DNA of 64,000 nt from Utricularia gibba (Eukaryota > Plantae > Magnoliophyta): the NCBI GenBank assembly GCA_002189035.1, contig CM007991.1, positions 3,596,001 to 3,660,000 of the forward strand. Reading direction: 5' to 3'. A program made the position numbers and the translations under genes. A model generated the notes under the pieces. That model was given only the letters and a program-made list of their open reading frames with translations. It was not told where the DNA came from and made no database searches. Below, piece after piece: positions 25,755 through 32,400 of the stretch. Each line of letters opens with the position of its first letter. Position 1 is the first letter of the stretch.

Positions 25755-25872
25755 GATTCTGGTTATCCCTCTCGGCAATCGGCCATTTCCTTTTCAAGCT
25801 CGGTTTCAGATGACATTGCTAAGACAAAAAGCCTTGACTCTTTTTATTGATGTGTATTGAGAATCGAGCAAG

Positions 25873-28800
25873 TCACACAACTTTCTCAAAGAGGACTCGA
25901 GCAACATGAAAATCGATGGTCGCCGGGCTAAAGTAAGCCTTATAGTAAAAAGCCTTAGCCACCATAAGAAAATTCTGCTTCACCTGCAGGCTCAGACCGT
26001 CCCTGGTTCCAGTGAGCACAAGCTCCGCCAGCCTCTGCATCCCCAGTTCGATCTCCGGTGTCATCTTCCCCCCCGCCCCGCCGTTGATCATCTTTTCCCG
26101 CTGAATCTCATGGCACACAGCCCTGGTAGCTTCCATCAGGTGCTGGTACTTGGGGTGAGCCTCCTCCCCCACCAACCATCCGGTCAAGTTCACCGTCCGG
26201 ACGAACAGCTCCGCGTCCCCCCGCCCTCCCTCCGCCCACGTCCTCAGCCATCCCACCCACTGCAGGCATTCTCCTTTTACAACAGATGTATTATTTTGCA
26301 AGGGAAGCACAAGAGCAAGAAAACCAACCGCCTGATGCAGCTTCTGGCGCACGTCGAGGCCTCGAGACAAGAGAGCGTCCAACGCCAACTGGTTCACCGC
26401 CCTCAGCAGCGTCCCCACCATCCCCGCCTTCACTCCATACCCTTGATGGGTCGCCGCAGCCTGGAACTCCTCCAGGAAAACCCGCTTCTGGTCTCCCAGG
26501 TGGACGGCGGAGCACAGGGCGTCGACCAACATCGCCGTTTTGGCCCAGGCGAGGCGCGGCACCCGTCTCTCGGGCTCGAAGATGCAGGCCGCGGCGGTGA
26601 AATACCCCAACAGAAGGGTTCTTTTGCTCGGGCCGGCTACCAGATCGCAGGCCTCGTACCATCTGCAACACATTGTAATAAGGAAACAAGAATTATAGGA
26701 ATTGTTTTTATGGGAATCATTCAGACAGACAGACAGACTGACTGACTTCAGGATGCTGTTCCACTCTTGCTGGTGCAACGCCTGACAGTGGTTGTAGTCC
26801 AGTTTCGCCAGCTCTAGATAAGCGCTGTTGTTCACGTGCGGCATTCTGCGTTTTTTTTTTTTTTTTGAAAAAATGGTTAAAGACAGAGAAAAAGTAAACA
26901 ATTATTACACAAGAAAACCTACCTGTAGAGGGTTTTGCCGATCCAGACGTCGTCGTCTCCGCCGTACTGCTCCAAGTAAAATCGCGCTTCGAGACGAGGA
27001 AGATTCGCGTGCCACGGCACCTCCAACGCATACCCTACCTGCAAAACGCCGCCCTTCTTTGACTCCTTTCACCGGAGAGAATCTCACCATTTTTTTTTCC
27101 TTATTTGGTATTAAGAAAGGTTTTTCTTGTTATTATTTAAATTTAAAAGGGAAAATGCGTGGGGCCCAGATGTCCTTATCCTGTAGTTTTTTTTTTTATT
27201 CATGGTGAGAAAAGCTGACCTCGCCGGGGAGGTCTTTGGTGATGATCCACTTGTCGACGAGGGCATTGCGAGCCCTTTTCTTCCTCAGGAAGTCGCCTGA
27301 GAAAGTGGCCGCCGCCGCGAGAATTTCCTCTCCGGGAACATCACCTGCGCCGCCCTGTACAAGTTGTACATCCCCGTGACCGCCTGAGTCGACTGCCCTG
27401 CGAAGCAGACGAACTCCCCCCTCCTCTCGAACTGCCGCAGCACCCCTGCCATCATCCATCATCCAGTTCAGTTCGCAGGCCTGTAACTCATTTTCAAAAA
27501 TTTCTTTTATTTTTTTGTTGGGTTGTGGATAATTCCGCACCTGATGAGACGGTGTAGCCATGCAACCTGAGCAGCCTGAACCCCATAGACGTGTCGTCGA
27601 TGTCCTGCACCTCCGAGTTTCTCGCCCAGCAGATTCCCTTCTCCGTCCAATACCTTCAATCAGTTCTCATTAAACTTTTCAAACATCAGATTGGATCGAT
27701 ACTTGATGTATTCCAAATGGGATTTAGGAAAAAGAGACAACCCAAGTCCCGAGAAGCATTTGGAAAGGATACCTGTGCAGGTACTGGATGCATGCATCAA
27801 TCTCCGTCTGAAAGTAACGGGAAATCCCCAGCCTCTGCAGCCTGTCCACAGCCCAGATCCGCTCGAACAGGTCCACCGGGTAAACATTAGGAACTGTGGA
27901 GAAAAAAAAACCGATGATTCTGCCATCAAGACCACAAATTCAACTTTAATTCACTGTAGGCTTCACGGTGGGACCGGACCTCCACCGTGAAACCGCCGCA
28001 CAATGTCGTCAAGATACTCGAGGCAGCGGCGGTGGCGCGTGTGATGGAACGCGAAGGCGGTGGATGAGGGAGAGAAAAGGAACGAGCCGTCGGATGACTG
28101 TAGCTTCAATAGGTTCTCCCATTTCAGCCCTTCTGTCGGCATTCCTTCCAAGCTGTGGAGGAGAGTCGTCGGAACACTGTGCATGACATCTCGTGGTATT
28201 CTGTGGGGAATATTAAAATATATAAATGAATTAAAACTAATGTTTATATTTATATTAAATTATTAACATTGTTCCGTACCTCGTGAGCTTGACGTCACGT
28301 TTGGCGTAAATCCGGCGAAGCGCGAGGGAATCGTCGGGAAGTGCGATGTCGAGAAGTCGCGCCTTCTGCAGCAACGACGGGAAGGCGACTTCGAATCCGA
28401 TGGGCATTTGCTCCTCTCTTTCGTCCTCTAGTTTCTGGATGTTTTCTCTGATGAACCGAACGCCTCTGTCGCGCTTATCGGAGTGGACGTTCCACGTAGC
28501 GAGGGCAATCACGCAGGCCAGAGTGTTGAGAATCCGGTCGTAGAGGGAGAAGATGTCGCGGTCACCCCAGGAGCCGTCCCAGAGCTGGTTCCCGGAAATC
28601 CAGTCCAAGCAGGAAGGGAACTGTGGGCGGCGCTGCCCGCTGCTGACGTCTTCCACCATGGCGACGTAGGCGGTGTCGTACGGCGACGCCGAGATGTCGC
28701 CGTCGTCGATGGAGCGGAGGATAGCGCATACTTTCTCCACCAGGGCGGCGATCTTATCCGGACACTGTTGCTGTTGGAGATGATTTGACGGCAAGGCGAA

Positions 28801-29476
28801 CAAAAGAGATCAAGAAACCAGACTCGGACAAAGCAAACAGAATTAGTGCTCACCTTGATATCTTCTTTTTCTTCGTCATCCTCCAATACGTCCTCCTCCC
28901 ACTTTATCAATCTCAATCCCAACTCTGCGTTTGCTGCAAAAAAAAAAAGAAAAAAATTCCCTCTTTATCAGCAAAAGAATCATGTTATCTGAACCAAATC
29001 GGTATCGGTTCCCAACACCCTCAAAAGTTGGGATTGTCGGAGGCCAATTTCAGCCGAGTGAAGTGAACGAGCAGTTCTGCATCAAACCCGATTCCGAATC
29101 CGAATCCGAATCCAGGCTCTTTACCTTGGGTTGTACGGGGACCGGAAACGGCATTACATCGAAGAGAGATCTCCGGCTTCGCCGAGTAAGTTTTAACTGT
29201 GCTTTGTCCTGGAAACACACGATTCCACAGAGCGGGTGAGGGGGAGGTTCACAGAGGGGTGAAGAAAGACAAGGGAAAGAACAAAATTTTAACGCATACT
29301 TCAAAACTATATGCCCCTGTCACCAGGACCAAATAGTAATGAAAACGACTACACTAGTTTTTAAAGCTAAAAAAAAAAAGCAGAGAAATTCAGATTCACC
29401 GCCGGTGAAAACAGGAGTGGAATTGGGTATGGTGGAACGGGCGCCGTGGCCGGCGGAGAGACGGAGGATGGACATC
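25873..29476 (-). CDS. CPS: Class II diterpene synthase, ent-copalyl diphosphate synthase type (TPS-c), 12 exons; one -1 frameshift in exon 8 as assembled
   Basis: [41 protein letters not shown], catalytic DIDD (about 27595-27606), [11 protein letters not shown]. No DDxxD class I motif seen. The frame breaks at ATG TTC CCG GAG AGG (27330-27340), where MFPGEEIL is expected. Confidence 0.95.
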
Positions 29477-32400
29477 ACCGGAGTCGCTGAAAATGGAAAA
29501 CAGGTCACCACAGGAAGCCGATAATTGTGTCAGGAAGAGGAGAAAGGGTGGCAAGTGGAAGAATGGGAGACAAGTGAGACTTGTGAAAGGGGGTTTTAAA
29601 GAGTTGGGAGAAGGAACAAGGAAATGGTGACAAAAACGTTGGAGATTCTGAGGAGCGCAGTGCATGGGACGACCATCCACAGCACAGAGAAGTTCTCCTC
29701 CACCTCCTCCTCCTCCTCCCCTGCTGCTCACCATTTTCACGCTTCATCATATTTAATGTAAAGCATCTTATCCTCCTCCTACTTTGTACTGTTCCAAATC
29801 CCTTTTCGCTGCTCGTATTCCTCCGTACCTTGTACACCCCACCAGGCGCCGATACGCGTACCGCAGGCCGTCTTTCCGACGTGCCCTAGTTTTGGACGAT
29901 GCGCATGAAACGGGGAACTCCAGCGATGCGTCGTCGAATATTTCACGACAGTCGCCATTATGCGGATGCTCCCCCTTTCAATAACCTGCTTTTCCTCTCT
30001 CCGTATTAGTTACATAAGTACAAAAGTATTTAAAAATTGTTTATTTAATTACTTTAATATTCCAATTTAATAAATATTTATTTATTTTATAACATCAAAC
30101 ACTCCAAATCATATACAATGTTCTTAAAAATATAAAAATATATTGAAAACACACATTAACCCACAATTTTCAAAACATAGGGAATCAAAAAAATAGGAAA
30201 AGCAAATGGTACGGACTAGGATTGTTCGTTGGGTCGGATTTGATTTGGAATGAAAAGAATCCGAACCCGATTAAAGATATCTGTAATTAATTCCAACCCA
30301 AAATAGAAATTTTCCCATTTTTATTTTAAAATAATATATTATCAATTTCTTATTCAACGGTTATCAAATAGTTTTGACTCTAATTCGTCATAAAACATAC
30401 AAAAACATTTTCATCATATGCGACTATGGACACTCACTCAATCTTCATGGTTTTACGTTTTTCGTATTGGATGGTTTTTCAGCTTATACATTATCACGGT
30501 TTACAAAACACGGATCCATTTGATCCATGAATACGAAAAGGGAGTAGGATTAATTTACTTAGGAACCGACCCACGAGCACCATTCGCAAGTAAACGACTA
30601 AACATGCAGGGGACAAGATGAAGAAAGGTCTTGGTTTAGTTTAGTGTGATAGTACGTTAGTGGGATTGGGGGGCATTTCAGGGATTACACTTTTATTTAC
30701 ATGCATGCGACAAATATTAAATGTTTCTTTTAGGAGAAAAAGTAATCGTTTTATGTTATTTTCACGGGAAAGTTCGCTACTGGGTCCCCCATTTGTGAGA
30801 AGCGACACGTTCATTTTATTCACTTTGGGTATAATAAACCAGAAAGGGAGTAAAGAAAAATCACTCATTGATTTAATATATATATATATTGAAGTAAAGT
30901 GACCTGCATTAGATGATAATATAGTTATTTGTAATCATGTATGAAAATTTTTTTCGAAAGTAAATAACATAAAATCATAAAATTGGATATTGAAAGCTGA
31001 TAATATGATACAAAATGAGTGTATATACTGACATAATTTGTAATAATAAAGTATAAAAGTTTGTTTGGATCATCTTCTGCTTTTAGAAAATACAAAAAAA
31101 AAAAAGAATTTTTAACAAATATGATTGATTTGTATACCAACCAAATATGATTTAATGCTCAAAAATCAATTTTGAAGTGTTTTTAAAAAGTATAATGGAA
31201 CATAACTTAAAGTGAACCCTTTAGTTACTTGTCCATGTAGTGATAGATTGTTGTTAGAGGTGGTATTCGCCCGGTCCGATCTCCTAAAACAGGAAAGACG
31301 ACAATATTGATTTTGAAAATTAGGAAAAAGGTGATTGGACAAGGCAGGGAGCGAGGATTCAGGGTCTAATCGCGGTCGTGTCGTGTCGATCTGGTGCAGT
31401 GGCACACACAGCACAATGGACAACTCTCCTCAAAATGGATTGCAAAATCTTCTGGGGCCCTGCCCATTCCACAACCAGCACCAACATTCTGTGATGGAGC
31501 ATGGACCCGTGGACCAGACCAGCCAGCCATGGCTTCCACCTTTTTCCAGGGAAAAAAAAGCTGGTGATGTGAAGTGAACCCGGTTCAGTCTTCTCTTCCG
31601 AGCCGGCCAGGGCAGACCAGCGATCCCCCACTTCCTTCCTTCATTACTAGTTGTGTTGTATTGGTGATGATGAATGTATTCTGGGAAACGTGTCTGAAAT
31701 GAACAAGATCTTCTGGTTCTGCTCTGCCCATCAAGTGCAGGGTTTTAATGATTAGGGTTCCTTGTCGGGTTTGATCTGATTGATGGGTTCCACTACCCAC
31801 ACCCACACCACAGTGGAGAGGAGTGGAGACTTGGCGTGATTGATTTCATGCTCATCCCTATCACCAGTTCCTGGAACTGGAGCAGATGTTATCACATCGT
31901 AACACACTTTGTCCTCCAACTTTCAAAGCAGGTGTCATTTCGGAGGGACTGCAAATAGGGGATGAGTTTTAATTTTATATATATAATGATCACTTTTTTA
32001 AACACAATGTGTGACATATTGTTAAAATTACCAGGAATTCATCAAAAGTTGCATACAAAATCGATCACTTAGATCATTGTTGTCTACATAGGAAAATGAG
32101 ATTATTCTTCAAAATTATAATATAATCTACATTACTATTACTGTTGCTATTATTTATAGCATAGTGGGGGGTAGCCATTTGGACAAGTCCACGTGGACAA
32201 ACAAGCCTACTTTAGACATTGTTAAAAGAATCACATGGTCAGTGATACAAGAGGTATTTCAGGCTACAACCCCTAATAAGATTTAATCACCAGATTTGAA
32301 AAAACTTAACAGTACCATAAATCTTGTACTCATTTTAGGTATCTATAATTTTTTTATTATAAAAAAATATATTTAATAATAAAAAACAATAAATAGTATA

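Follow-up and report, generated by a model that had tools for sequence, protein, structure and literature searches.

What does it mean when a plant copalyl diphosphate synthase (CPS) of apparent hormone type carries arginine at the one site where histidine is expected? CPS of this type is the first committed enzyme on the way to gibberellins. Peters and co-workers define gibberellin CPSs partly by histidine 331 of AtCPS, and no enzyme-level control of entry into the pathway other than the His/Arg switch at this position has been proposed. The question is raised by a minus-strand class II diterpene cyclase gene in a 64,000-nt stretch of Utricularia gibba DNA (assembly GCA_002189035.1, contig CM007991.1, positions 3,596,001 to 3,660,000; hereafter the window, numbered from its first letter). 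The original prediction, made from the letters alone, took this gene for a positional GA1 orthologue that still makes ent-copalyl diphosphate (ent-CPP) and has escaped the brake on flux to gibberellins, suggesting either recruitment into high-flux diterpenoid metabolism or rewired hormone control. The analysis described here favours a plainer reading, to which we assign a probability of about 0.6: the window gene would be the plant's gibberellin-type ent-CPS, and its arginine one more instance of a natural variant that recurs and is tolerated, here on a branch that evolves fast.

Arginine at the magnesium switch

The residue at the switch was located by searching the Protein Data Bank (PDB) sequences with translated exon 6 using phmmer. 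The best match was AtCPS (3pya, E 6e-15), which aligned end to end over 39 residues on positions 238-276 of the 3pya chain (PNVFPVDLFEHIW), with the switch segment on positions 238-250. Since a 2025 paper numbers the gibberellin-CPS motif to residue 333, thereby fixing H331 and N322 (PMC12410513), this end-to-end alignment places the arginine encoded by CGG at 27859-27861 on H331, exactly as had been proposed from the letters. Arg329 of the window protein thus stands in place of the regulatory histidine of the gibberellin-CPS definition. The same search showed arginine at the switch in the syn-CPS OsCPS4 and glutamine in labda-7,13E-dienyl diphosphate synthase (PDB 9b99). Glutamine also occupies the site in a Morus notabilis CPS that is otherwise canonical in its LHS, PNV and DIDD motifs (P0283), so the site does not require a basic residue.

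The codon was then compared with sequencing data, using contigs of four public runs (two DNA and two RNA-type, from four studies) over window positions 25800-29600. CGG was unchanged: no other letter, and hence neither CAC nor CAT, was found at this codon in any of the four runs. Two contigs tie the codon to the CPS gene, a DNA contig (run X1, record 7) that spans 27831-29260 with 0 differences from the window, and an RNA-type contig (run X7, record 22) that crosses the exon 5/exon 6 joint and continues to 27831.

Each of the four runs also contained further contigs that matched only a stretch of approximately 74 nt within exon 6 (27793-27866, including the ERIW codons). Beyond this stretch these contigs continue into unrelated sequence on both sides, and in the RNA-type runs a different upstream exon is spliced on, which therefore indicates a partial copy of exon 6 in another transcribed locus. 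An A>G difference at 27823 probably derives from this copy elsewhere in the genome.

Catalytic residues and predicted activity

Except for the switch histidine, the motif set of the window protein matches that of gibberellin CPSs (PMC12410513). The His-Asn base dyad, which is defined by the LHS and PNV motifs (PMC12410513, PMC7952997) and which the original prediction had pointed out, is present as H259 (AtCPS H263; codon CAC at 28157-28155, within LLHSLEG of exon 5) and N320 (AtCPS N322; codon 27888-27886, in the PNV motif of exon 6). The DIDD catalytic acid follows WAR (model residues 367-378, 27628-27593, with D375, D377 and D378 at 27604-27593). All seven active-site aromatics, F327, W331, W367, F410, W462, W503 and Y509, are kept, their AtCPS counterparts being F329, W333, W369, F412, W464, W505 and Y511 (PMC12410513). 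A terpene synthase N-terminal domain was found in exons 6 and 7 by Pfam, and the N-terminus is Ser/Thr-rich and nearly without acidic residues, consistent with a plastid transit peptide. Neither of the class I motifs, DDxxD and (N/D)Dxx(S/T)xxxE, occurs anywhere in the model protein, as expected of a monofunctional enzyme. By these features the window protein is identified as a monofunctional class II diterpene cyclase of the ent-CPS type. Since the DIDD, LHS/PNV and aromatic residues are intact, its predicted product is ent-CPP, and the enzyme would protonate geranylgeranyl diphosphate (GGPP) to supply ent-CPP for ent-kaurene and gibberellin synthesis. Literature searches found no work on CPS or on gibberellin enzymes in Utricularia.

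The likely effect of the arginine can be judged from residue swaps in other enzymes. AtCPS is inhibited by Mg2+ with an inhibition constant (Ki) of 0.7 mM; in the H331R variant this inhibition is no longer appreciable in vitro, and the opposite change in AgAS, R356H, takes the Ki from 12 down to 0.25 mM (Mann et al. 2010, PMC2898348). By analogy with both swaps, Arg329 probably weakens the inhibition, and millimolar Mg2+ (and GGPP) would be expected to restrain the window enzyme far less than AtCPS.

Phylogenetic placement and gene context

Exon 4, used in an exhaustive HMMER search, yielded a full-length representative from Perilla (P0048), the nearest of the fetched proteins at 55% (tblastn against the gene), and a word search with P0048 supplied the best 120 named eudicot CPS-type proteins, a set rich in Lamiales. 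Trees of 127, 63 and 32 rows were built with the window model included and the switch column masked. All three tree searches grouped the window gene in the core-Lamiales gibberellin-type clade, together with SmCPSent, Isodon CPS1 and the Scutellaria, Leonurus, Paulownia_a, Erythranthe 04G and Sesamum_a proteins. Support for the clade by the Shimodaira-Hasegawa-like approximate likelihood ratio test (SH-aLRT) was 99 with 127 rows, 99 with 63 rows under LG+C20, and 94 with 32 rows, where the ultrafast bootstrap (UFBoot) was 96. The window gene sits on a long terminal branch (0.66 substitutions per site; median in the 127-row tree, 0.08), and identity to its nearest relatives is about 63-66%. Word searches with exons 4 and 5 for closer relatives found nothing nearer than 59-73% identity, the exon 4 search returning only fragments at no more than 60%. 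A search for a Lentibulariaceae CPS by which to date the change gave as its sole Genlisea match a 154-aa N-terminal fragment (52%).

The window gene might instead belong to the sister core-Lamiales clade (c.1.2/1.3-like), which includes the arginine-type Sesamum_b, Andrographis CPS1-like and Tectona enzymes as well as the Callicarpa TPS1/2 and Erythranthe 14G proteins. In that case it would count as a paralogue of specialised type, and the hormone copy would either lie at another place in the genome or have been lost, with the window gene taking over from it. Under LG+G4 with 32 rows this placement was 8.0 log-likelihood units worse (approximately unbiased [AU] test, p 0.046), and a position outside both clades was 8.5 units worse (p 0.029). 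The derived sister-clade states F492 and S633 are both missing from the window gene, which, with the three tree searches, argues against the sister clade. Pairwise identity leans slightly the other way, the highest value being to Paulownia_b of the sister clade (66.8%, versus 66.2% to Paulownia_a).

Gene context was examined by comparing six-frame pieces of seven loci with the window in both directions: three gibberellin-type loci (L001, L002 and L005), one from Lamioideae (L003) and three of the sister clade (L004, L006 and L007). The hormone-clade CPS of Erythranthe nasuta, Paulownia fortunei and Sesamum alatum lies between a chalcone isomerase (CHI)-like gene upstream and an F-box-like gene of ∼530 aa downstream. 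For all seven loci the CPS itself was the sole match in the window. The three-gene context has thus been lost or rearranged in the genome from which the window comes, and the description of the gene as "GA1-positioned" finds no support within Lamiales, because the conserved flanks are missing.

Several of these results weigh against a gibberellin-type assignment of the gene. When the window gene was constrained to group with the 15 sister-clade rows under LG+C20 with posterior mean site frequencies (PMSF; 63 rows), the resulting tree outscored the unconstrained quick tree by 2.4 log-likelihood units (p-AU 0.56). The clade-diagnostic columns number just five, and at these the window gene keeps ancestral states, without the two sister-clade residues named above. 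Neither the CHI-like nor the ∼530-aa F-box-like flank was found anywhere in the 64-kb window, although the flanks of the sister-clade loci are equally unlike it. Since the analysis covers the 64-kb window, a second CPS copy with histidine may possibly lie elsewhere in the genome. The effect of arginine in a background only ∼66% identical may also differ from that of H331R in AtCPS, because the H331 side chain faces the outside of the protein and acts indirectly (PMC12410513). Given the AU result under the mixture model and the five diagnostic columns, orthology to the hormone clade appears favoured but is model-dependent and not proven. The three trees lean towards the original claim of GA1 orthology and the mixture model leaves it insecure, and we regard membership of the sister clade as unlikely.

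Recurrence of arginine and its interpretation

Among 110 named eudicot CPSs with intact dyad and DxDD motif, the switch residue is histidine in 97, arginine in 12 and glutamine in one (Morus). At least six His/Arg changes are required on the 63-row tree. Two fall within the hormone-type clade, one in the window gene and the other in the ent-CPS of Leonurus japonicus together with that of Phlomoides rotata, whose sole annotated protein cluster among the best 120 matches carries arginine. The arginine codon is CGG in the window and CGT in Phlomoides (L003), a difference that fits independent origins; the three gibberellin-type loci compared above have CAT or CAC. Judged from these alignments, arginine at the switch is a minority state, yet a recurrent one. 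The original prediction hinged on arginine not being common in bona fide gibberellin CPSs of related families, and here the answer is divided: arginine recurs, also in the nearest large family, but in a minority of sequences.

The published record contains further cases. The conservation pattern of Mann et al. was based on four genetically proven gibberellin CPSs (PMC2898348). Of 17 new c.1.1 candidates from Lamiaceae reported by Johnson et al., 14 have the histidine and 3 lack it, and several specialised enzymes in their study have it too. Wheat LMA-1 is a dyad-bearing CPS with arginine at the switch. OsCPS2 is of the arginine type in the alignment of Mann et al. (PMC2898348) and, when placed under the OsCPS1 promoter, brought gibberellin-deficient oscps1-1 rice back to near wild-type height. 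Finding arginine in the hormone role is thus no necessary sign of rewired control.

Selection for arginine as a means of freeing the enzyme from Mg2+ inhibition, in the service of high-flux specialised ent-labdane diterpenoid metabolism alone or of a dual-purpose role, would agree with the prevalence of arginine in specialised class II cyclases, with the in vitro effect of the swap and with the arginine-bearing Andrographis and Sesamum copies of the sister clade. However, no terpene synthase (TPS), kaurene synthase-like (KSL) or cytochrome P450 (CYP) gene was found among the neighbours of the CPS in the 64-kb window, arginine also occurs in apparently hormone-type CPSs, and the long branch fits a general acceleration of rate. 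Such selection is accordingly improbable, and the substitution, which recurs in Leonurus and Phlomoides and which OsCPS2 shows to be compatible with rescue of oscps1-1, is not good evidence for either recruitment into high-flux diterpenoid metabolism or rewired gibberellin control. The step from arginine to an escaped brake and new biology is weak because arginine recurs, OsCPS2 works in rice, the branch is a fast one, and position and clade are both insecure.

A gibberellin-type ent-CPS with a recurrent, tolerated arginine remains the preferred explanation. A stronger form of it, doubtful but less so than recruitment to specialised metabolism, is that the window gene is the sole ent-CPS of this rootless aquatic carnivore and is truly insensitive to Mg2+ and GGPP; the light-linked feed-forward brake on gibberellin flux that has been proposed for AtCPS would in that case be dispensable in the lineage, or other control would have taken its place. 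If so, the window gene, with those of Leonurus and Phlomoides, would provide natural tests in planta of the switch proposed by Mann, Peters and co-workers. The occurrence of arginine in the window gene, in Lamioideae and in other eudicot hormone-type CPSs suggests that the histidine rule for hormone CPSs has exceptions, and such enzymes would be cheap material for testing the physiological relevance of the brake. By itself the window gene adds one further exception and demonstrates no new mechanism.

Gene structure, transcription and integrity

The modelled coding region is interrupted by 11 introns, all GT-AG and 69-191 nt in length (Table 1). Nine of these were seen as joints in RNA-type contigs of runs X6 and X7, and the remaining two (28934-29124 and 26846-26922) follow from the lengths of contig pieces between neighbouring joints; this shows that the CPS gene is transcribed and that its splicing follows the model. 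At intron 1 (29206-29399) the contig of run X7 skips 192 nt with an extra C, whereas that of X6 skips 191 nt, the X7 joint reflecting either sequence variation or an alternative acceptor in an accession that has diverged.

Table 1. Coordinates of the CPS gene and its switch codon in the window.
Feature	Coordinates	Strand	Details and evidence
Class II diterpene cyclase (ent-CPS type) coding region	25873..29475	-	12 exons, 782 codons + stop
Exon 1	29400..29475	-	Start codon 29475-29473; joint 29207/29399 in RNA-type run X6
Exon 2	29125..29208	-	Gene model and RNA-type contigs
Exon 3	28854..28933	-	Gene model and RNA-type contigs
Exon 4, gamma-domain part	28280..28770	-	Gene model
Exon 5, LLHSLEG	27980..28200	-	Joints 28200/28280 and 27893/27980 in contigs
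Exon 6, PNV motif; N320, F327, W331	27773..27893	-	Gene model
Codon CGG, Arg329, at AtCPS His331 position (Mg2+/GGPP inhibition switch)	27861-27859	-	Alignment to 3pya
Exon 7, WAR...DIDD	27541..27653	-	Gene model
Exon 8, FVCF and DKW motifs	27220..27445	-	One C-run base short at 27334-27336
Exon 9, WIGKTLY motif	26923..27038	-	Gene model and contigs
Exon 10	26747..26845	-	Gene model and contigs
Exon 11, alpha domain, without DDxxD	26329..26662	-	Gene model and contigs
Exon 12 and stop codon 25875-25873	25873..26259	-	Gene model and contigs

In the window sequence as given, the reading frame shifts by 1 nt and runs into a stop inside exon 8. Taken with the very long terminal branch, this could indicate a decaying pseudogene in which the arginine is one among many unconstrained changes. 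All four runs, DNA and RNA-type, carry an additional base (G on the forward strand) behind 27333, which changes the minus strand from TTC CC/GGA to TTC CCC GGA GAG (..MFPGEEIL..) and restores an open frame of 782 codons. Because the missing base is present in four of four runs, the frameshift is probably a homopolymer error of the assembly (probably a long-read one) or a private variant rather than decay, and the caveat of a frame correction attached to the original prediction is thereby resolved. Polymorphism tells against decay as well. Against the window, runs X3 and X7 show 24 coding differences, of which 14 are synonymous. The other 10, which are non-synonymous, all lie within exons 8-12 at codon 431 or beyond, mostly in the non-catalytic alpha domain. 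The class II catalytic half (gamma/beta) shows synonymous differences only, among them all five in exons 4-6, a pattern that indicates purifying selection there. With every catalytic motif intact and spliced transcripts present, a pseudogene is very improbable, and for the sampled accessions it was rejected, the exon 8 frameshift being missing from all four runs.

The gene is compact, with 12 exons in 3.6 kb versus 7-7.9 kb in Erythranthe (L001 10001-16980) and Paulownia (L002 10001-17866). Exon 4 corresponds to two exons in these Lamiales relatives, as seen from split tblastn matches at both loci, and an intron has therefore been lost in the window gene; exons 11 and 12 each match several separate tblastn blocks in the same two loci, again indicating intron loss. 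The public gene model for the arginine-type CPS of Sesamum alatum (L004 10001-90939) spans 81 kb and is probably merged or mis-joined over a tandem array. Elsewhere in the window the CPS is accompanied by Frigida-like, Bax1-I, ribosomal protein S24e, LRR and RhoGAP genes and by a 376-aa F-box-like gene unrelated to the one that flanks CPS in other Lamiales.

Comparison with known CPSs

The window protein resembles AtCPS/GA1 (PDB 3PYA, 3PYB and 4LIX) in being monofunctional and in its LHS, PNVxPVDLFExIW, WAR..DIDD, FxCF, DKW and WxxKxxY motifs. It differs in having Arg329 where the strongly Mg2+-inhibited AtCPS has His331, and in the compaction of its gene. With SmCPSent (SmCPS5 of Salvia miltiorrhiza, A0A0U3LQ20; ∼63% identity over ∼720 columns) and the other Lamiales c.1.1 ent-CPSs it shares the dyad and DxDD, and it groups with them in the three trees. 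Unlike the window gene, these have histidine at the switch, terminal branches of about 0.05-0.2 and, in Erythranthe, Paulownia and Sesamum, the CHI-like/F-box-like context. OsCPS2, maize An2 and wheat LMA-1 are likewise LHS/PNV ent-CPP synthases with arginine at the switch, but they are paralogues found beside a histidine-type hormone CPS, with phytoalexin or other roles, whereas in the present genome the hormone-type copy is apparently the window gene itself. Arginine at the switch is also what the window gene has in common with specialised-metabolism ent-CPS paralogues of the OsCPS2, An2 and ApCPS2 type. The closest precedent is provided by the enzymes of Leonurus japonicus (UVE15959.1) and Phlomoides rotata (KAL8530613.1), which belong to the gibberellin-type clade, keep LHS, PNV and DIDD intact and carry arginine, although on a separate branch and with an apparently independent origin.

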